Part shown: piece by piece, positions 1 through 22,743 of the stretch | Position numbering within the stretch: position 1 is the first letter of the stretch | Layout: every line of letters starts with the position of its first letter | DNA from: Fonticula alba ATCC 38817 | Taxonomy: Eukaryota > Protista > Nucleariida | Assembly (NCBI GenBank): GCA_000388065.2 | Contig: KB932203.1 | Length of the DNA: 64,000 nucleotides | Strand: one strand, 5' to 3' | Notes under the pieces: model-generated | The model's database searches: none | What the model was told of the DNA's origin: nothing | What the model saw: the letters and a program-made list of their open reading frames with translations, nothing else | Translations under genes and position numbers: made by a program

Positions 1-2012
1 CCCTGTACATTGGCGGCGGGCGCAACCCCCTGGGCAACCCCCCCGAGGATATGGAGGCCTTCCGTACGTGTCCTGCGCAGTTCCTCCTCCTCCTCCTCCT
101 CTTCCTCCTCCCCTGCTTCCCCCCCCCCTCCGCTACATATACACATGGTGGCAGTTCATTGACATGTACCTCCTTCCTCCTCTCCCTCCTGGTCGCAATG
201 TCCCCCTTGTGTCCTCCTGATCAGTCCCCCCGATCGCCGTGGAGAACGGCATGATTGTTGCCGAGCTTAGCCAGGTTCCCAACCAGCCGATTATCTTTGC
301 CGATGAGGACTTCGGCCGCTCGGAGGGTATGTTTTCATCTTGCTCCCCAGTTTGTGCCGTTTGCCGGGCCCCTCACCTTCGTCTGTCGTCGCTCCCTTTC
401 CACTGATCGCCCTCTCCTTCCTCCCCTCCCCCCCCCCTCCCCCGGCCGCGACTTCCTTGCAGACTCCTTCCTGGCCAAGACCTGGAAGATCTTCATGCGC
501 ACCAACGAGCCCTACATTGTCGGGCGCTTCCCCATGGTCAAGGCGGCTGTCCGGGCCATGGACGCCATCCAGGAGTTCGCGGCGCAGCGCGTGCCGACCG
601 CCCCGAGCGTCGAGCGCTTTGCCGTGGTCGGCGCCTCCAAGCGCGGGTGGGTGAGCTGGCTGACCGGCGCGGTGGACTCGCGTGTTGTGGCCTCGGCCCC
701 GATCGTCATCGACGTCCTGGACATGTTCAACAACTTCAACAACATTTATCAGACCTACGGCCGCTGGCCACTGGCCCTGAATGATTACACTGAGGCCAAC
801 ATCACTCAGTGCCTCAACTGCCCGGCCTTCGAGCGCCTGGCCGACGTCGAGGATCCCCTGGTGTACATCGAGCGGTACAAGGAGCGTGGCGTGCCGGTCT
901 TCGCCATCAACGCCGTGAGTGACGAGTTCTTCGTGCCGGATGGCTGGAAGTTCTGGTACCCCTTCTATGACGGCGAGAAGTACCTGGCTTACCTGCCCAA
1001 CACCGAGCACTCGCTGGTCGGCCATGTGCGCCAGGTGACGTGCGTGTGCCCCCCCCCCCCTCCCCCTGCATCCCCTGCATCCCCTGTCGCAATCTCTTCC
1101 TCCGCCTGGGTTCTTCCCTTCACATTGTCCTGACCCATCGTCATGTGCCCGTGTCACTGCCGCCCACCCTCTCCTGCTCCTTTTGCTTCTGCCCCTTCCC
1201 TCCCCCCCCCNNNNNNNNNNNNNNNNNNNNNNNNNNNNNNNNNNNNNNNNNNNNNNNNNNNNNNNNNNNNNNNNNNNNNNNNNNNNNNNNNNNNNNNNNN
1301 NNNNNNNNNNNNNNNNNNNNNNNNNNNNNNNNNNNNNNNNNNNNNNNNNNNNNNNNNNNNNNNNNNNNNNNNNNNNNNNNNNNNNNNNNNNNNNNNNNNN
1401 NNNNNNNNNNNNNNNNNNNNNNNNNNCGTTCCCCCCCCCCCCCCTCGGCGCCCTTTCAGTGAGACCCTCAGCAGCCTCATGCACCTGCTCATCTACGGCG
1501 GCGAGCGCCCGGTCTATGACTGGTCCCTCGACCCGTCTGGCCAGCAGATTGTCTTCCGTTCGGAGACTCGCCCGGTCTCGGTGAAGCTGTACCAGGCCCA
1601 CAACAAGAAGGACCGGTCCTTCATCCTGAACTGCTACCTCAAGTGCAAGTGGGTGCCCACCGATCTGACGCCGGTCGATCCGGAGCAGAAGGTCTGGGTG
1701 GCCAATGTCGAGCTTCCGGAGACCGGGTACCGTGGGTTCTTCGTGCAGGCCGAGTATGATGTGACTGATGCCACGAGCCTGGTCCCGCGGCACCAGGAGG
1801 TCACCGGCGCTGGCCCGGCCGGCATTGTTGCCGGCACCACCCTCCCCGGCAGCGACGAGCGCATCTTCACCGTCACCACTGGCGTGTCCATCGTTCCGCT
1901 GGAGATGCCCCACCCCCCGTGCGGCGTCGAGTGTGACGACTGCGCGGCCTGCTCGCCCAATGGCGAGTTCGCGGATTGGGAGTTCTTCACCGACCCGGCC
2001 CCGGTCTTCTAG
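1..2012 (+). CDS. PhoPQ-activated pathogenicity-related (PqaA) family / Dictyostelium AprA-like alpha/beta hydrolase; 5' end lies outside the window. Exons about <1-63, 225-326, 463-1039, 1460-2012
   Basis: The spliced product reads VPNQPIIFADEDFGRSE-DSFLAKTW...FPMVKAAVRAMD...GASKRGW...DEFF...PNTEHSL, the motif order typical of PqaA (nucleophile G-x-S-K-R-G at about 630-647, then Asp and His). Intron phases are consistent with GT..AG splicing. Confidence 0.85.
1211..1426. other. Assembly gap (N run) inside an intron of the PqaA-like gene
   Basis: Run of N flanked by C homopolymers. Confidence 0.99.
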
Positions 2013-7849: not shown

Positions 7850-8170
7850 NNNNNNNNNNNNNNNNNNNNNNNNNNNNNNNNNNNNNNNNNNNNNNNNNNN
7901 NNNNNNNNNNNNNNNNNNNNNNNNNNNNNNNNNNNNNNNNNNNNNNNNNNNNNNNNNNNNNNNNNNNNNNNNNNNNNNNNNNNNNNNNNNNNNNNNNNNN
8001 NNNNNNNNNNNNNNNNNNNNNNNNNNNNNNNNNNNNNNNNNNNNNNNNNNNNNNNNNNNNNNNNNNNNNNNNNNNNNNNNNNNNNNNNNNNNNNNNNNNN
8101 NNNNNNNNNNNNNNNNNNNNNNNNNNNNNNNNNNNNNNNNNNNNNNNNNNNNNNNNNNNNNNNNNNNNNN
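7850..8170. other. Assembly gap (N run) flanked by (CT)n
   Basis: Run of N. Confidence 0.99.
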
Positions 8171-8438
8171 CTCTCTCTCTCTCTCACACACTCTCTCTCT
8201 CACTCTCTCTCTCTCTCTCACACACATCTTGTGCCTCTCGCCATATCCCACTTTCGTGTCCTCATGAGTGTTGGCTCGATGCGGCCGCCTTTTTGCCCGT
8301 TGCCCTCCCAAGCTCGATGATCGGCAAAGATCCTTTCCTGAACATGACACTCCCGACACCTGGGCCCTGTGCCTCATATCCCTGCGCCCGCGCGTCAGGA
8401 CATCTTCACCAAGGACAGGGCATTTATTTCCAGCAGCA

Positions 8439-10308
8439 TCAGGGCGACCAGCTGGCCTGAGAGTCCAGAGACATGGAGGAAGGCGCCGGATCGGAAGAGG
8501 GGTCCTCCTTGAGGATGGCGGCCTCCTTGTCGGCATTTGCATCCTTGCCTACGGCCTCCGTCGACTCGAGACGCAGCCAGGCGAAGGGGAGCTGACCAAG
8601 GCGATGCAACCGCACCAAAGCCACCACCAGCAGGGGCAGAACCACACCAATGCAAACAATCAGCAGCGCCAGGCCAAGCCAGCCGATCCACGAGGTCAAA
8701 GCCAGAGGAGACGGCCCGGGGAAGTCCCAGGACATTGCCGCCAGGAGGCCAAAGTGCGAAGAAGGGTAGATGTGCTGGGACCCGGTGCCTTGACGGTTGT
8801 CCCGAATGAGGGACGCCTCGCTGACCGCCAAGCCAGCTGTGGCCAGCGGAGACCCATGGAGAAAGAGGAAGTCCGGCCGCTCGGTGGCCACCCCGGTGAA
8901 GTCGTGATACGTATCACCGGCATGCTGGTTGCCCGGAAGAAGGCGGAAGCTGTCCATGAAGCCGCTGGCCCGCAGGAGATGCACATGGAAGTCGTCTTCC
9001 GACTGGGCAGCCATGTCACCGGTGGCCACCACCGGGATGCCGTGGGGATTGTAGTTGGAGATGCTCAAAACCTGTGTTTGTGTGTGTGTGTGCGCGCGCG
9101 CGCGTGCGTGCGTGAGTGTATGCGGAGGTGCATTCGCATGGTTAGTTTGGACTTTGCATGTGCGAGCCGGAAGGGGGGCACACGTGTAGCGAAGCCACAG
9201 GGCGCGGGCACAATCGAAAGGGCGGACAAGAAAAAAGACGCACCATTTGCAACGTGCTTTCGGTCAAAGCCGCCGGGGCATTGGGATCCAGCCGGGTGTT
9301 GAAGTGGTAGAAGGAGCGCCGGGAGGACTTGTCATGGAGAAGGACCCAGGAGACGGATCGCGGCGCGGTGTTGCCGAATGACATGCACCCCGGGAGGGAG
9401 GGCGTCTTACACAGGGAAAAGGTGCCAGATTGCAGGGGGAGGAAGCGTGTCCGGCGGAAGAGGATCGGATTGTGCAGGGCGATGCCCAGGCGCAGGTCGG
9501 CCACCGTCTGCGGGGCCAGGGCATACTGCTCGCCGAGGGCCGAAAGGAGCAGATCCAGGTGCTCGGTGGCCAGATCTTGCAGAGCCACCACATCCGGATT
9601 CCGGGAAGTGATGGCACTGACAAGGATGGGCATGCGCTCCGTCCAAGGGGGCCCGCGGGTGGATGCGCTGTCCACATTGAAGGAGAGGGTCCGCAGGAAC
9701 AGGCGAGTAGACGAGCGCCCGGCCGACGGGTGTTGCTGATGGGGGGGCGTCGGGTCCGTGCCCTCTTCCGGGCCTTCCACTTCCTCATCGAGGGGTGGCG
9801 AGGGAGTCGGGCCGGAGTCCGGCACGTTGGGAGTAGTTAGCACTCGAAGGACCTCGGCTGCGGTCGAATCCGAGTCGATGGCCACCCCGAAGGTGGCAGG
9901 GAGACCTGACTGGTCGGAGTCGGCGGGAGCCACTTCAACTTGGCCGAGCCCCGGGAGACGCCGAGACCGGGCCCGCCGCCCAGGCGGGGGAAGGGCGGCT
10001 CGCTCGACCGCCCGTCCGACCATCGATCGAAGGGTAGCGCAAGCCTGATCGTGGGTCCTCATGATGCCGGGCCAGCTGGCAGCCGAGGGGGCATGCCCAC
10101 GCGCCGGGACCACACGGCAGGCGGCAGGCTCGGCCATCGGTGTCAGGAGCACCTCAACGCAGGCACCACTCGGATCATCTCCAGGACAAACCACAGCCCG
10201 AGAGTGCACACCAGCAGGAGGGGCCTCGGCCAGCCCGGCAGCCAGCAGGCCCGCCAGGACCAGGAGCAAGGCAGCCCAGGTGCGTGGGCCGACCGGACAG
10301 GGGGGCAT
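8439..10308 (-). CDS. EEP (endonuclease/exonuclease/phosphatase) superfamily protein A: signal peptide, degenerate catalytic motifs, C-terminal TM helix. Exons 10308-9244 and 9071-8439
   Basis: Hydrophobic N-terminus (WAALLLVLAGLLAAGLA), then RTLSFNV, PDVVALQD, NPILFRR, SGTFSL, GDM, GFMDSFR, TYHDF, RPDFLF, YPSSHF. C-terminal hydrophobic stretch WIGWLGLALLIVCIGVVLPLLVVALV. One phase-0 GTGCGT..CAG intron joins the two ORFs. Confidence 0.85.
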
Positions 10309-11426
10309 ACGTCGGTAGATGTGCCAAGTCCAGAGACAGGGCTCGAGAGCGAAGAGTCAACGCGCGTGCTGGTGATCGATGGGCCAAGGAGCGGGGATGT
10401 GAGGGAGTGGGGCCCGGGGCGGCAAAGGTGCTTCGGGGAGGGACGGGAAGGGAGGGGGGGGGGAGGAGAGTAGCCATGTGCCAGGGTGGAGAGGAGGAGG
10501 CACTCCCCTGGTTGTGAGTTGCCGAGAGGGCGGAAGCTTTTGTGTCTGGCCCACAGTCGGTGACTGGCGCCGGGATCTCGGCCCACGCCCCCGGGGGATA
10601 TCCCTCTCCGGGGGTTCTGAAACAACGAAGTCCGCGACGTTCCCAAAGGGGCGAGTCGGGCGCGGGGGGGGGGGGGGGGGGGGGGCCAAAATGAAGGCAC
10701 CGCTCGATCAACCGCCGGGCGCCGCGCCGACGGTTCGGCAGGAGGACAAAAACAGCAAGCATCTGTTGGTCTACATTCAGCAAGCCTTGAGGCCGGTTGC
10801 TTTGTTCCGCAGTGCCGGCCATTCGCTCGCAAGTCCAAGATCCAAGAAGCAGCCCCGCCTCCCCCCAGAGCGCGTGTAATTTCCGAAGGGGCAGTCACCG
10901 GGCGGCCCGGGCGCCTGCCAACGGAGTGCTCTTGTTTACAATCGACTTTTGGTTGAACGGCCTGGGGGCGGAAGGACAAACCCCAAGCGCCGGCCGGTCT
11001 TGGCCCGAGAGACGCGCCCGCTTGCGCCGGGTCTTGGGCCTTCAGGTCCCGACCGAGCCCAGATCACTCGGGCCTGCGCCGCAGGTCTCCCACAAGGGCC
11101 AGTTAGCAATGGAAGCAGGGTGTCCGGGGCGTGCAACATACAAAATACTAACGCCTCAGTGAGTCTAGCCCCTGGTGTTGGGGTCCCTAGGTCGATTTGT
11201 CCTGTCCAAACACATCTCGAGTCAGGCGCAGGGGACCAGGCAGATAGCAGACGCCCCCCGCCCCCTTCTCCCTCTCTCTCCCTCTCTCTCCCTCTCTCTC
11301 TGTCTCTCTCTCCTCCACCACAAGGGGGTTTCGCACGTCTCTTTGAAAGGACACAATCTATTTCGGACAGCAGGCAGGCGAGCAGACATTTCCAACAGGG
11401 AAGAGAGAGAGAGAGGGAGATGGCGC

Positions 11427-12377
11427 TCACTCGGATTCCGGATAATCAAAAGCCACTTGGGCCCAGATCGGAAAGTGGTCACTGGGGAAAATGGCACCAA
11501 GGGTCGGGTCGGGACGATACTCGCGATTGATGTTGGCATCCTTGACGGTGACCTGCCAGGCGGCTTCCGGCGAGTCGGCCTGCACAAAGACATAGTCGAA
11601 CTTGCGCATGGCCATGCCGGAGAAGGCGTGGAAGGTTTCCCCCGGCGAGGGGAGCGGATTCACCACGCGGAAGGTATCGATGAAGTTCTCACGCTGCAGG
11701 GCAAGCACCTCGGGCGAAGATTCCGATTGGTTGTTGAAATCCCCAAGCAGAATGACCGGCAGGCGTTCGCCATTCATGAGGGAAACCGTGCGAGCCAGTT
11801 GCTGGGAGCTGGACAGCCGCGATGTCGAAGAAACATGATCCATGTGCAGGCTATACACGAGGAAGGGCTTCTGCGAGGCCAAATCAAGGAGACGTGCCCA
11901 GGTACTGATGCGGGGGATGCTGTTGCCGTACGACTTGCAGGCCGGGAGGGAAGGCTCGTCACAGAACCAAAAGGTGCCGGATTCCAGAAGGGCGAAGCGG
12001 TCTTTGCGGAAGAAGATGGGCGAGTACTCGCCGGCTTGGTGGCCATCGTCCCGACCGACGCCCACATGCGCATACTCGTCCAGTCGCTCGATGATGAAAT
12101 CCAGCTGCGAGCTGAGGACCTCCTGCAGGCCCACCACGTCGTACCCCCGCTGGCCCATGATCTCGACGGCGTGCTCCCGGCGGTTTTCCCAGATGTGCTC
12201 GGCATCGCCGGGGTTGGCATACCGGATGTTGAAGGAAAGGAGATTCAGCTCAAGCGAAGCGCTCGGCAAGGAGGGGCGGCCACCTTGGTCTGGGGGGGCG
12301 GCGGCGTCGGCCGCGCGCGTCACCGCCAGAAGGCACACGAGCAGGAGGCCGATCAGCAGGCGGGAAGTCAAGCGCAT
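11427..12377 (-). CDS. EEP superfamily protein B, secreted, intronless, about 316 aa
   Basis: Signal peptide MRLTSRLLIGLLLVCLLAVTRAADA. Complete catalytic motif set: SFNIRY, GLQE, HMDH, GDFN, RKFDY, FPSDHFP. Confidence 0.92.
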   Translation of the reverse strand: MRLTSRLLIGLLLVCLLAVTRAADAAAPPDQGGRPSLPSASLELNLLSFNIRYANPGDAEHIWENRREHAVEIMGQRGYDVVGLQEVLSSQLDFIIERLDEYAHVGVGRDDGHQAGEYSPIFFRKDRFALLESGTFWFCDEPSLPACKSYGNSIPRISTWARLLDLASQKPFLVYSLHMDHVSSTSRLSSSQQLARTVSLMNGERLPVILLGDFNNQSESSPEVLALQRENFIDTFRVVNPLPSPGETFHAFSGMAMRKFDYVFVQADSPEAAWQVTVKDANINREYRPDPTLGAIFPSDHFPIWAQVAFDYPESE

Positions 12378-13190
12378 GCCGATGACGGGGAGGGAGGGGG
12401 AAGAGGAGGAGGGGGAGGAGGAGGAGGAGGAGGAGGAGGAGAGGGAGGCAATCCGCAGGGCAGACCAGGGGGATGGATAGGGGAGGCCGCGAAAAGGGGC
12501 GGGCGAGTGTGTGTGTGTGGGGGGGGGGGTGTGGAGGAGATCCGAGAAACGAACAGACCCCGGGACCTGGTCGCCCCCGTCACACACAAGTCCCCTCTAA
12601 AGGGATCTCGAGTGTGTGGCGGCAAGCCGACTGATCGACCCCTCCCATGGCGCCAATCCCCTTGCCTCGCGCACATGGAGAGCCATCTTCTCTCAAGCCG
12701 CAGGGCCCCCTCCTGCGGTCTGAGGCCGATCTTCCCGATTGGCCACCCCGCCGAAGTCCCCGGCGATCGGGGGGGGGGGGGGGGCGGAGCGAGAGCCGGG
12801 GGCCCCGGGGTGGAGGGGCTCCGGGCAGAGGTCCAACGCCGTCCCTCCGGCCCCGGGCCATTCTTGTCGTCCAGATCGAGGTCACTGATGCGTCGGCATC
12901 TGGACATGGGTCGTGCCTCCATCGGCAGTACCCGTCCCTGGCTGTGTCATCCTCCCACACTATTCGGCGGCCATGGTGCCGCAGGCACACGCGCAGCCCC
13001 CCCCGGTAAGCCAAGGGAAAGCAATTCCGCTGAGCCCGCCCCTCCCCCTCCTTCCTTTCCCTCCCCCCCCCCGTCCCTCCCCGCTTGCTCCTATTTGTTC
13101 CTTTCTTTGTGATCCTCTGCCCCCCCTATCGCCCCCCCCCCCTGCCCCGAGCTCCCCCCACGCCACCTCATCGACAGCCCTCCACATACC

Positions 13191-15409
13191 ATGGCCAGCT
13201 CCGCCCCTGCCAAGGCGTCTGCCTCTGCTGTAATGTCGCACTTCCGCTTTGCCCTTGGCCAGCGTGCGGCCGCGGCGTCGGCCAGCGCCCCAACCCCAGC
13301 CTTGGCCGGCTTCGGTGGAAATGCCGCGCGCACCGGTGTCCTCCATTTCGGCCAGCGGTCCTTTCCCACGCCGCTGGCTTTCCTGTCGGCTCCGCGCGGT
13401 CATCCGACGCACCTGACCCCAGACCATGCCGCCACCCTCTTCGACCAGGCCGATGGTCATGGTCTCGGTGCGTGCCGGGACCAACCCACGCCCCTCCCTC
13501 TTGCGCGGGCGATTGGCGGAAAGAAAGAGAAGAGAAGCAAACCAACCCCTTTCTTCATTTCCCCTGCTCTGCCCATGCTCCTGACATGTCCCTGGCCGAA
13601 CTCCCTCTCCCTCCCTTCCTTTCCCCGCCCGAATCCCAGCCTTCAACCTTGAAACCGACTATCTGATGGGGTCTCTGATCCCTCTGCTCCGGCACAGCAG
13701 CACCGGCAAGGTCAAGCGCTCGGACACCTCGGCCGCCGTGACCACTTCCCTCCCGAGCGATGGTGATGTGGCGCTGCTGCCGAATCTGCGATCTTTCCTC
13801 GGCTTGTCGCCCGACACCTTGGTGTTCTCCTCGCCGCGCATGGTCTTCCCCGGGGCCCCAGGCGTTGGCCAGAAGACTGCCGGCAACACCGATGACACCA
13901 TCCTCTTTGAGAGCCGATACGGCCGCCGGGGGGCCAACCTCCAGCAGTTCATCCAGATGGTGGATCTCATGTACTCGGACCGGACCCCCCCCGCCGGCCC
14001 GGAAGCCGGGCGTCTCCTGCCGGTGGAGTTGCCGCAGGCCGGCTCGCCCACCCTGCTGATGGCCTTGGCCGACCTGCCGCCGGCGCTGGCCGGCGCGCGC
14101 CGGTCCCTCCGTGCGGCCGAGCGCAATGTGGCCTTCATGGATGGGCTGTTGAGCCATTATCAGAAGACCGGCGGGGTGCAGCCGGTGCGCGGGGCCTCCG
14201 ACTCGCCGGACCCCAGTCCGGCGGTCCTGCCGGCTCTCTTCGCCCCGATCATCGGCCCACACCCGGCGGCCGCGCGGCACGGCGCCAACTATGTGGCATC
14301 CGTTGTGGCTCGCCAGGGCATCGCCAATGGCGAGGGAGATGTCGCGGTCGGGGCGCCGGAGTCTTCCGGCTTCAGCCCCTCCTCCGTGCTCGGGGGCGTG
14401 GTGTTGGTGGGCTTCGACTTGACGAAGCCCCAGCAGCGACGCCTGGTGCGTGAGGTGCTGCGCACGGTCCCCGGGCACTTGCCGCGTGCGATTCTGGTTG
14501 GCTCGTCCGCCGGGGCCGGCACCCCGGAGGAGGCCCTGGCCGCGGTGCGCCTCGGTGCCGATCTGGTCCTCGATGCCGGGGCGGCGGCCGTGCGCGATGC
14601 CTCCGACGGCCGGGCTTGGTCGCTGTCTCACGGGGCCCTGGCGGAGGCCTTCCTCGGCGCCGAGGAGATCGACGAGTCCGAGCTCGACCACCTGCGCCAG
14701 GAGCGCCAGCTGTTCACCGACAATGAGGCGGCCATTCGTCGGGCGGCCGAGGAGGCCGATCGCGAGCGGGCCGAGGCAACTGCCCTGGCCGAGGCCGAGG
14801 GGCGCGCGACCCCCGGGCCGGCTGGCCCGCCGCGTGCTCGTCATGATGCTCCGCCCACGCAGCCCGACGACCTGGACCGACGCCTGGCCCGGGTGGCTGA
14901 CATGCTGGCGGGCAGCCAGCGCCAGGTGAACCTCTGGGATCGCGAGCACGCCATGGCCAAGGGCCCCTTCGTGAAAGGGTGCCCGTGCTTCGCCTGTGCG
15001 CGCCACACCCGCTCATACACGCACCATCTGCTCAACACTCAGGAGCTGTTGGGGCCGTTGCTGCTCAGCATGTGCGTCCTTTGGCTGGTCTTTCTCGCCC
15101 CCCTCCCCCCCCCCCACCGCCCGGCTCCTTCCTCCTGCTATGCGCCCTCTGCCCTGCCCCACCTTCATCCCCACTGCTATCCAGGCTTTCGCATGATGTC
15201 CATACTAAGCACGACATCTTCCCCGCCCCCCTCCCGGTTGGTGCCACCCATTTGTCCCATCCACCCGAAGTCACAATTCCCACCAGGCGCTTGGGCTTTT
15301 CCGTGAAGTGCGCCAGGTACTGGCTCGGCTGGCTGGCCCGAGCAGCAAGCGCCTGCGCACCGGCACCGATGCCGATGACGCCTCGCCCAAGCGCCCGCGC
15401 GTGGAGTAA
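13191..15409 (+). CDS. QTRT2: Queuine tRNA-ribosyltransferase accessory subunit 2 (QTRT2/QTRTD1). Exons 13191-13467, 13640-15071, 15271-15409
   Basis: N-terminal ARTG..FPTP..LSAPRGHPTHLTPD. Later G.GTPEE.LAAVRLGADLV and the zinc site C-x-C-x2-C-x25-H (GCPCFAC...HTRSYTHHLL..QELLGPLLLSIHN, joined across a phase-2 intron). I did not see the catalytic DSGG/DD motifs of QTRT1/Tgt. Confidence 0.8.
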
Positions 15410-15655
15410 GTACGCGCCCCGGCCCCGCTTCCATTTCGACCCTCTCCTCGCCCCGACTGCGCGCCCGGCGCCATTGGGGCACCCCTTGCTTTGTTTTTTT
15501 TTTTTTCCCCCAGCCTCTTGGAAATCCCTCCTGTTGCCCTTCCCCCCTCAGCACATAATAGACCTTCTTGCATTGGAACAAGGAAACGAAAGCGACACCA
15601 GTCTCACAGAGGGAAGGGGCGGGCGGGCGGGCGGGCGACGGCACAACTCATCGCT

Positions 15656-17044
15656 CTAGCCAAAGTGCCATGCGACATCGGCCAAAATCGGGTAGTGGTC
15701 GCTGGGATAAATGGTCCCCAGGCCGGAGGGCAGAGACACATGCTGGGTGAGCATGTCGACCGCGGTGACATTGTACCCGGCCAGGTTGGCGCCGGTCCAG
15801 AGCCACACGTAGTCGATCTTGCGGATGCCCTTGCCGGTGAACTCGTGGTAGGTGAGCCCACGACGGGGGTCATGATCGAGCTGACGGAAGGTGTCCATGT
15901 AGCCGGCATCCTGGAGAACCCGGACTTCGGTGGCATTTTCGCTGTGGTTGTTGAAGTCCCCGGTGATCAGGGTCGGCAGCCGGGCCAGGTTGTACCGGTC
16001 GATGGTGTCAACCAGCTGCTGGGCGCTCTGGATGCGGGAGTTGCTGGACATGTGGTCCAGGTGCACATTGAAGTGGTAGAATGCGCGGCCGGTGGGGACG
16101 TCGAAAAACTTGGCCCAGGTGCAGATCCGGGGCAGGTTGTTGCCGTACGTCCGGCAGCCGGGAATGTGTGGCTGGTCGCAGAACCAGAAGGTCCCGGATT
16201 CGAGAACCTGCAGACGATCGGCCCGATAGAAGATGGGCGCATACTCGCCGGCGGTGAGGCCATCATCGCGGCCCACGCCGACATGCCGGTACTCCGGCAG
16301 CTCGGCCAGGAGCTCTTGCAGCTGGAAGTGCAGGACCTCCTGCAGCCCCGCCACCAGGGGAGCCTGCTTACGCAGGATGTCAAACACCTGGGGCCGGCGC
16401 TGTGGCCAGCCATTCAGCCCATCGCTGGCCGAGCCGTAGCGAATGTTGAAGGACAGCGCGCGGAAGGCCATTTCGGTGGCCGCCACCGCCGGGCGCCAGG
16501 GCGTGCGCGGAGCCACGCCGGCCGTCGAAAGCTGGTGACTCTCGGCGGCGACCTCGGCAATGGCCCCGGCGGCCTCGGCGGCCGGGGCTGTGATGTTCAG
16601 CTCCAGCAGCTCGTAGCCCGCGGCCCCGTCCAGGCGCTGGCGGTAAAGCCCACGCGAGGTGAAAGCCCCCCCGGGCAGGGACTGGGAAAAGTAGCCGAAG
16701 GTGTCGTCACCGTTCACCTGCCCGGCAAGCGGGCCCTCGGAGGAGACACGCGTGAGCAGGGGGGCCAAATTATCGGGCCAGGTGTCGGCGTTGGCATCGG
16801 CGGTGCCGGCGGGCCAGAGCAAGGTCTGGGGCAGGCCCGGGCCGGCGGCCAGGCGAACCGCGGCACCCTCGGCCAAGGTCAGCTGCGGTCCGGCGGCCAG
16901 GAGGCCCTGGCTGAAGAGAGCGCGTAGCCGGCGCATCGGCGCGGTGTCTTGCTGATGCGGCGAGGTGGGCAGGGCGGTGGCCGTGATGGCCGCCGCCGCC
17001 AGCAGGGCCAGCAGGGCCAGCAGGAGGTGCTGGAGAGCACGCAT
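15656..17044 (-). CDS. EEP superfamily protein C, secreted, intronless, about 462 aa with an extra N-terminal region of about 170 aa
   Basis: Signal peptide MRALQHLLLALLALLAAAAITATA. Catalytic set SFNIRY, GLQE, HLDH, GDFN, RKIDY, YPSDHYP. Clearly paralogous to 11427-12377. Confidence 0.92.
   Translation of the reverse strand: MRALQHLLLALLALLAAAAITATALPTSPHQQDTAPMRRLRALFSQGLLAAGPQLTLAEGAAVRLAAGPGLPQTLLWPAGTADANADTWPDNLAPLLTRVSSEGPLAGQVNGDDTFGYFSQSLPGGAFTSRGLYRQRLDGAAGYELLELNITAPAAEAAGAIAEVAAESHQLSTAGVAPRTPWRPAVAATEMAFRALSFNIRYGSASDGLNGWPQRRPQVFDILRKQAPLVAGLQEVLHFQLQELLAELPEYRHVGVGRDDGLTAGEYAPIFYRADRLQVLESGTFWFCDQPHIPGCRTYGNNLPRICTWAKFFDVPTGRAFYHFNVHLDHMSSNSRIQSAQQLVDTIDRYNLARLPTLITGDFNNHSENATEVRVLQDAGYMDTFRQLDHDPRRGLTYHEFTGKGIRKIDYVWLWTGANLAGYNVTAVDMLTQHVSLPSGLGTIYPSDHYPILADVAWHFG

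Positions 17045-22261: not shown

Positions 22262-22333
<72 letters not shown>
22262..22333. repeat. (GT)n microsatellite running into an assembly gap
   Basis: About 36 GT units, then Ns. Confidence 0.95.
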
Positions 22334-22438
22334 NNNNNNNNNNNNNNNNNNNNNNNNNNNNNNNNNNNNNNNNNNNNNNNNNNNNNNNNNNNNNNNNNNN
22401 NNNNNNNNNNNNNNNNNNNNNNNNNNNNNNNNNNNNNN
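22334..22438. other. Assembly gap (N run)
   Basis: Run of N. Confidence 0.99.
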
Positions 22439-22743
22439 GTGTGTACGCCAGGGAATGGGGGGCACAGCTGGGCATTAATTCCCCTCAATTGCCGATCACC
22501 CCGGGGCCTGAGGCTCGAGGCTGGCCAAGTGGCAGCGTCCAGTCACACCTCTGCCAGGACCCGGGTATCACCCTTCAGACGCCCGGACCATTTTCCACCC
22601 CCCTCCCCCCCCCCCCCCCGCCCCCCATTTTCCCCCTCAAATCAGGATATCACCCCGCCCACCCCTTCCCCTCGCGCCTCCCGACCTTGCCCCTTGCCGC
22701 TCCCTATTCCATTTGGGGGAGAGCAACAGAGAAACACCCCCCG

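Follow-up and report, generated by a model that had tools for sequence, protein, structure and literature searches.

How did a cluster of bacterial-looking genes come to lie in the genome of the slime mould Fonticula alba ATCC 38817, and what might their products do? The genes, here called A, B and C, occupy the minus strand between positions 8439 and 17044 of a 64,000-nucleotide stretch (the window, to which all positions below refer) of contig KB932203.1, assembly GCA_000388065.2, and all three belong to one subfamily of the EEP family (PF03372). A preliminary description of this DNA had proposed a horizontally acquired gene that was locally triplicated. We instead read the cluster, with a probability of roughly 70%, as a lineage-specific expansion of a Mg2+-dependent EEP phosphoesterase subfamily of the BT3783/BVU_0621 kind, in which two secreted enzymes (B and C) and a non-catalytic relative (A) are old residents of the genome. 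The genes and their parts are as follows.

8439..10308, minus strand: gene A, exons 10308..9244 and 9071..8439 (stop included), about 565 residues in all; signal-like N-terminus, N-terminal extension of about 170 residues with four Cys, degenerate EEP domain, predicted membrane helix and tail of about 55 residues.
9244..9708, minus strand: N-terminal half of the EEP domain of A (exon 1 residues 201-355), with SFNV, LQDL (Glu to Asp), a Cys pair, and TRLDP for HxDH.
9072..9243, minus strand: intron of A, GT..AG, 172 nucleotides, phase 0, with a (CA)n tract ahead of the acceptor, as read from the sequence.
8718..9071, minus strand: C-terminal half of the EEP domain of A (exon 2 residues 1-118), with GDMA for GDFN and PSSH for PSDH.
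8613..8705, minus strand: predicted membrane helix of A (exon 2 residues about 123-153, about 31 residues; Kyte-Doolittle peak 3.22), followed by RLHR and the tail.
11427..12377, minus strand: gene B, ATG at 12377 and stop at 11427; 316 residues, intronless coding sequence; signal-like segment at about residues 1-23, EEP domain at 40-314.
15656..17044, minus strand: gene C, 462 residues, intronless coding sequence; signal-like segment at about residues 1-24, EEP domain at 190-462, four N-x-S/T sequons.
16478..16972, minus strand: N-terminal extension of C (residues 25-189), 165 residues between the signal-like segment and the EEP domain; AlphaFold confidence (pLDDT) 31-60.

B and C both exceed the Pfam gathering cut-off for PF03372 (Exo_endo_phos, 24.5 bits), with 40.3 and 40.4 bits, respectively, over profile positions 1-225 (E about 4e-10), and share 45% identity over 288 residues (E 1e-92). 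The two exons of A were handled apart throughout, as separate queries and as separate rows in alignments and trees. Searched in this way, neither exon matches Pfam at E <= 0.01. Both match B by BLASTP (exon 1 E 4e-24, exon 2 E 5e-19; 32-33% identity), and against the profile of the subfamily they reach 83 and 70 bits. Exon 1 has 355 codons and ends in phase 0, homology to B picks up in frame just past the AG of the intron, and the A-to-B alignment is unbroken over the splice junction. By these comparisons A, B and C are paralogs, and we place high confidence in the family assignment, the paralogy and the motif states described below. The preliminary description had reported three minus-strand EEP genes of one subfamily, two of them intronless and one with a single intron, and this is borne out; the shared motifs that it listed (SFN and PSDH/PSSH among them) are present in our alignment. 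Searched in six frames, the whole 31.3-Mb assembly yielded A, B and C as the only copies of this subfamily, and other EEP genes, unrelated to it, are present elsewhere in the genome.

The full EEP catalytic core is found in both B and C, namely SFN (Asn), QE (Glu), HxDH, GDFN, DY (Asp) and SDH. Across 30 aligned sequences these positions vary little or not at all. Five of them are altered in A: the Glu of QE is Asp (QDL), both His of HxDH are lost (TRLDP), the Asn of GDFN is lost (GDMA) and the Asp of SDH is Ser (PSSH). Given these five changes A is most likely inactive, and we regard it as most likely a relative by descent that is non-catalytic. Together with its predicted C-terminal helix, this agrees with the earlier view of A as a membrane-tethered dead copy. 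A further feature is a pair of cysteines in the loop FWFC-x7-C-xxYGN; in B these residues, C139 and C147, are the only Cys of the mature protein, and they probably form a disulfide.

Searches of the PDB by sequence returned 3G6S (E 7e-42), 3MPR (1e-33), 4C1R (2e-33) and 3L1W (3e-21). With a profile of the Cys-pair clade described below, the same four structures rise to between 1.6e-65 and 1.2e-45 (the first three, 1.6e-65 to 1.9e-57), and the next EEPs, Nocturnin and TDP2, follow at 5e-10 or weaker. Foldseek with the model of C keeps this order, 3g6s, 3mpr and 4c1r being best (E 6e-26 to 2e-23, TM by target 0.78-0.84). The proteins therefore fall in the BT3783/BVU_0621-type subfamily, whose structures lead by sequence and by fold, far ahead of other EEPs. 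The closest solved structure is that of BVU_0621 of Bacteroides vulgatus (3G6S; 34% identity, fold E 6e-26, TM 0.84). This protein and that of Enterococcus faecalis (3L1W) are structural-genomics EEPs without known activity; both are bacterial and are without the Cys pair.

The nearest characterised relative is BT3783 of Bacteroides thetaiotaomicron (PDB 4C1R, apo form 3MPR), which Cuskin et al. (2015, PMC4978465) assayed as a divalent-metal phosphatase with phosphorylated sugars as substrates. It acts on phosphorylated high-mannose N-glycan and was deposited as a mannosyl-6-phosphatase, and the assayed enzymes were BT3783 and BT2630 only (PMC4978465). BT3783 shares the EEP subfamily with the Fonticula proteins (E 2e-33 with a single sequence, 2e-57 with the profile; Foldseek E 2e-23, TM 0.80), and every catalytic motif aligns; it is exported, has about 290 residues and needs Mg2+. 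However, identity is only about 26-33%, BT3783 is bacterial and lies in a mannan-utilisation locus, and it has Ser where the Fonticula proteins carry the Cys pair. The subfamily had been described as uncharacterised and mostly bacterial; it is mostly bacterial, but BT3783, as a mannose-6-phosphatase, means that it is not wholly uncharacterised. More distant are TDP2, Nocturnin and CCR4/CNOT6L, which share the superfamily fold and the metal-dependent catalytic core but are 13-19% identical and lie outside the A/B/C subfamily. They work inside the cell, with DNA-protein adducts, NADP(H) or poly(A) as substrates. The literature that we looked at (on horizontal gene transfer in Fonticula, secreted proteins of Fonticula and COG3568) held no paper on genes A, B or C.

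The wider family is large, with 13,039 cluster representatives at E <= 1e-3. Named matches and 53 genome loci from GTDB come from bacteria of more than ten phyla, every ESM Atlas neighbour is a bacterial cluster, and no fungal or nucleariid homolog occurs among the best matches. Many high-scoring metagenome relatives (P0003, P0121, P0122, P0124 and others) hold two or three tandem EEP domains of this subfamily, and in further relatives the fusion partner is a SnoaL-like (PF13474) or amidohydrolase (PF07969, PF01979) domain. After C, the best profile match is a EukProt protein from Rhodelphis marinus (P0004) at 480 bits; everything else scores at most 338 bits. Among the 262 retrieved proteins, the Cys pair is confined to A, B, C, P0004, a protein from Diphylleia rotans (P0127) and five environmental proteins (P0012, P0123, P0131, P0133 and P0197). 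Most of these proteins also have an extra Asn (GDFNN), P0127 included, which is absent from the bacterial sequences examined.

We looked for the Cys pair more widely. It occurs in none of the 53 GTDB loci, though one scan pattern required GTFWFC, nor in any of the 61 metagenome loci whose motif could be read. The best 80 loci of the metagenome scan were all of bacterial type, for example L060, which adjoins a glucose-6-phosphate isomerase gene. Among the best 8000 candidates from a search with a profile of the Cys-pair clade there was no further Cys-pair protein, a search that also missed several of the clade's own members. P0004 and P0127, from two other bacteria-eating protists, are the closest relatives outside the Fonticula genome; they share the Cys-x7-C pair, hydrophobic N-termini and the same clade. 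They are about 41-46% identical to B and C, they are known only from transcriptomes and have never been studied, and a membrane-anchored degenerate paralog is not known in Rhodelphis or Diphylleia. In one of the environmental proteins, P0012 (JGI metagenome, 311 residues), the signal-like segment is followed by the Asn/Lys run NNNNNNNNKNKNN. AT-rich protists, for example dictyostelids, typically have runs of this kind, and this one hints at a eukaryotic source.

Phylogenetic trees were unrooted, and the two Cys columns were removed from all but the first quick tree. In a 33-row tree without A, B and C are firm sisters (98.3 SH-aLRT / 1.0 aBayes), the products of a duplication in the Fonticula lineage, and a single branch parts nine Cys-pair rows from 24 bacterial-type rows (SH-aLRT 96.8 / aBayes 0.999). 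In the thorough 54-row tree (LG+G4), the four Fonticula rows form one clade with SH-aLRT 72, whose sister group is made up of six Cys-pair rows, Rhodelphis and Diphylleia among them (91). Quick site-heterogeneous trees give broadly the same picture, with B and C together with exon 2 of A at 92-95. An approximately unbiased (AU) test rejects two poor trees that put B and C far from the Cys group (p 0.02-0.045). A "-fast" tree in which exon 1 of A was drawn to a Chloroflexota row was discarded, as it was 69 log-likelihood units worse than the thorough search. A belongs to the eukaryote-type Cys-pair clade. Of the local triplication proposed earlier, the pairing of B with C stands, and the derivation of A from the same local duplication is weakly supported, being the arrangement of the best tree with an alternative that the AU test does not reject.

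The base composition of the cluster is fully native. The G+C content at third codon positions (GC3) of A, B and C is 0.75-0.86, compared with 0.69-0.90 in adjoining genes. About 530 kb separate the window from the end of its contig, which measures 3.6 Mb, and neighboring genes (PhoPQ_related, an acyltransferase and the RNA polymerase I large subunit) are each spread over several open reading frame (ORF) pieces, which fits introns. The intron-rich neighbors of the preliminary description are thus recognisable in the acyltransferase and RNA polymerase I genes.

Because the nearest relatives are of eukaryote type, the Cys pair is absent from the bacterial sequences examined, the clade is well supported and GC3 is native, we infer that the cluster does not stem from a recent transfer. 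Any acquisition from bacteria predates the Fonticula lineage or passed via other eukaryotes, and the unrooted tree gives no direction for such a transfer. The distribution of the family suggests that the Cys-pair clade probably descends ultimately from a bacterial gene. A direct and fairly recent transfer from bacteria into the Fonticula lineage, followed by local tripling, is quite unlikely. It could draw on the top named matches of B, which are bacterial at 40-45% identity, on the all-bacterial ESM Atlas neighbors, on the intronless coding sequences of B and C and on the lack of fungal or nucleariid homologs among the best matches, but the far higher score of the Rhodelphis protein argues against it, as do a Cys pair and a GDFNN insertion that are absent from every bacterial sequence examined and a Cys clade that holds at 96.8 without the Cys columns. 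Identity among the paralogs has moreover fallen to 32-45%, and A has acquired an intron. We found neither a supported nesting of the genes inside a bacterial clade apart from other eukaryotes nor a foreign GC3, and horizontal acquisition as originally stated is not supported; the nearest relatives are those in Rhodelphis and Diphylleia and the five environmental Cys-pair proteins.

The opposite extreme, an ancient vertically inherited eukaryotic gene lost almost everywhere, with no transfer at all or with transfer from eukaryotes to bacteria, is also unlikely, if somewhat less so. Only three named eukaryotes carry the gene in a collection that covers EukProt and NCBI, the 13,039 representatives include organism-named loci in more than ten bacterial phyla, and very many independent losses would be required; nor does the branching within the clade, which is poorly resolved, obviously follow the species tree. 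This is set against the spread of members over three distant supergroups (Opisthokonta, CRuMs and Archaeplastida) and clade features that suit eukaryotic secretion, such as the Cys pair, N-x-T sequons and signal-like N-termini. Bacterial contamination or an assembly artefact was considered, given the bacterial look of the family and the runs of N nearby (about 7850-8190), and was rejected as scarcely credible: the cluster sits deep in a large contig, flanked by intron-bearing eukaryotic genes, A has a GT..AG intron and GC3 is native.

All three proteins begin with a hydrophobic stretch of about 20-28 residues in a Kyte-Doolittle scan, which supports the signal peptides proposed earlier, and a second hydrophobic segment is found in A only. 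This pattern fits two soluble secretory proteins (B and C) and one type I membrane protein (A, as predicted), and our confidence in secretion is moderate. C had also been credited with an extra domain. This part of the preliminary description is not supported: residues 1-195 of C match only themselves in a collection of 5.8 billion proteins, and the extension has low model confidence (the EEP domain of the same AlphaFold model is mostly at pLDDT > 90), so that a folded domain is not supported by the model. Residues 130-164 of C (16553-16657, minus strand) end in an N-x-T sequon (LELNIT) and coincide with weak predicted strands; a profile built from the N-terminal extensions of P0004, P0123 and P0131 gives them 5.2 bits. 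This match is weak and the profile holds three sequences, but the score tops all 500 shuffles (maximum 1.7). The counterpart in the three proteins (W.L.E.NVT) sits just upstream of the EEP domain. The extension of A does not rise above shuffles against the same three-sequence profile, and pairwise BLASTP and phmmer comparisons among the N-terminal extensions of A, C, P0004, P0123 and P0131 gave nothing significant. There is thus a weak hint that the extension of C was inherited and not added in Fonticula.

B and C, with their full catalytic set and signal-like N-termini, probably pass into the secretory pathway and act extracellularly or within endolysosomes or phagosomes, where they may remove phosphate or cleave phosphodiesters on material from ingested prey. 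Because the nearest characterised relative is the mannose-6-phosphatase BT3783, sugar-phosphate groups on glycans are our best single guess for the substrate, with nucleic acids as the main alternative; confidence in either is low. A would present a luminal EEP-like domain on a membrane anchor and is most likely a non-catalytic binding protein. The alternative that B and C are secreted nucleases acting on prey DNA or RNA or on extracellular DNA, and not sugar phosphatases, is doubtful, though it is the rival that we take most seriously. The EEP superfamily includes many nucleases, TDP2, Nocturnin and CNOT6L are the next structural neighbors, and NCBIfam gives hints of exodeoxyribonuclease III (xth; E 8e-4 for B and 5e-3 for C) and, for C only, of ExeM/NucH (E 1e-4), all far below cut-off. 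Similarity to the BT3783/BVU_0621 group in sequence and fold is nevertheless far higher (E 1e-33 to 7e-42, vs 1e-7 to 1e-10), and within that group only a sugar phosphatase has been assayed. A more far-reaching proposal would see in the Cys-pair proteins a eukaryote-only, disulfide-stabilised branch of the bacterial glycan-phosphatase family spread among phagotrophic protists and divided in Fonticula into soluble enzymes (B and C) and a membrane-anchored dead copy, with A as a receptor for the same phosphorylated glycan that serves cargo sorting or recognition, or the sensing of prey surfaces, an enzyme-derived analog of the mannose-6-phosphate receptor. We consider this highly speculative and give it very little weight.

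Several observations count against an old, eukaryote-type expansion of sugar phosphatases as we propose it. As to function, our guess at the substrate extends to the Fonticula proteins what was found for a single enzyme with about 27-33% identity, 3G6S, the solved structure nearest to them, is without a known function, and the sub-threshold NCBIfam hints point to nucleases. Signal peptides and the membrane helix are predicted from Kyte-Doolittle hydrophobicity alone, and the three genes are known here only as genome sequence. As to descent, P0004 and P0127 could conceivably come from prey or a contaminant, and the five environmental Cys-pair proteins come without an organism name. Branch supports were computed with LG+G4 or in quick PMSF runs, and the 33-row tree has a topology that is a snapshot of an unfinished search. 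Finally, grouping A with other eukaryote-type rows instead of with B and C costs only 2.9 log-likelihood units (AU p 0.53).

The cluster is not strictly tandem, as an ORF on the opposite strand, unrelated to the EEP family, sits between B and C.

13666-15306, plus strand: TGT/QTRT2-like ORF (queuine tRNA-ribosyltransferase), PF01702, E 1.8e-15.

Its Pfam match is limited to the C-terminal zinc-site region (profile positions 267-322 of 357), suggesting that the gene is divergent or bears introns. About 6 kb from gene A lies a second bacterial-looking gene, the PhoPQ_related gene (255-2012, plus strand; PF10142, E 2e-62), which belongs to a largely bacterial family and is broken by a run of N. 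Such runs, which are assembly gaps, occur at about 1210-1490, 7850-8190 and 22330-22440; the stop of gene A is followed after only about 250 bases by one of these gaps. Microsatellites of (CA)n and (GA)n are common in intergenic and intron DNA.

A, B and C are new, somewhat elaborated members of a known enzyme family, and current views are not overturned by them. The main gain is a corrected evolutionary reading, in which these genes are old and common to other protists and are not a recent transfer into Fonticula. BT3783 supplies a concrete substrate lead in the form of sugar phosphates. Should B and C prove to be phosphoesterases that are secreted or phagosomal, they would be part of bacterial digestion or phosphate scavenging in a close relative of fungi. 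The membrane-anchored, degenerate A is a candidate pseudoenzyme receptor, and the Cys-pair clade would represent a small example of a bacterial enzyme type fitted to the eukaryotic secretory pathway, with a patchy distribution among predatory protists.

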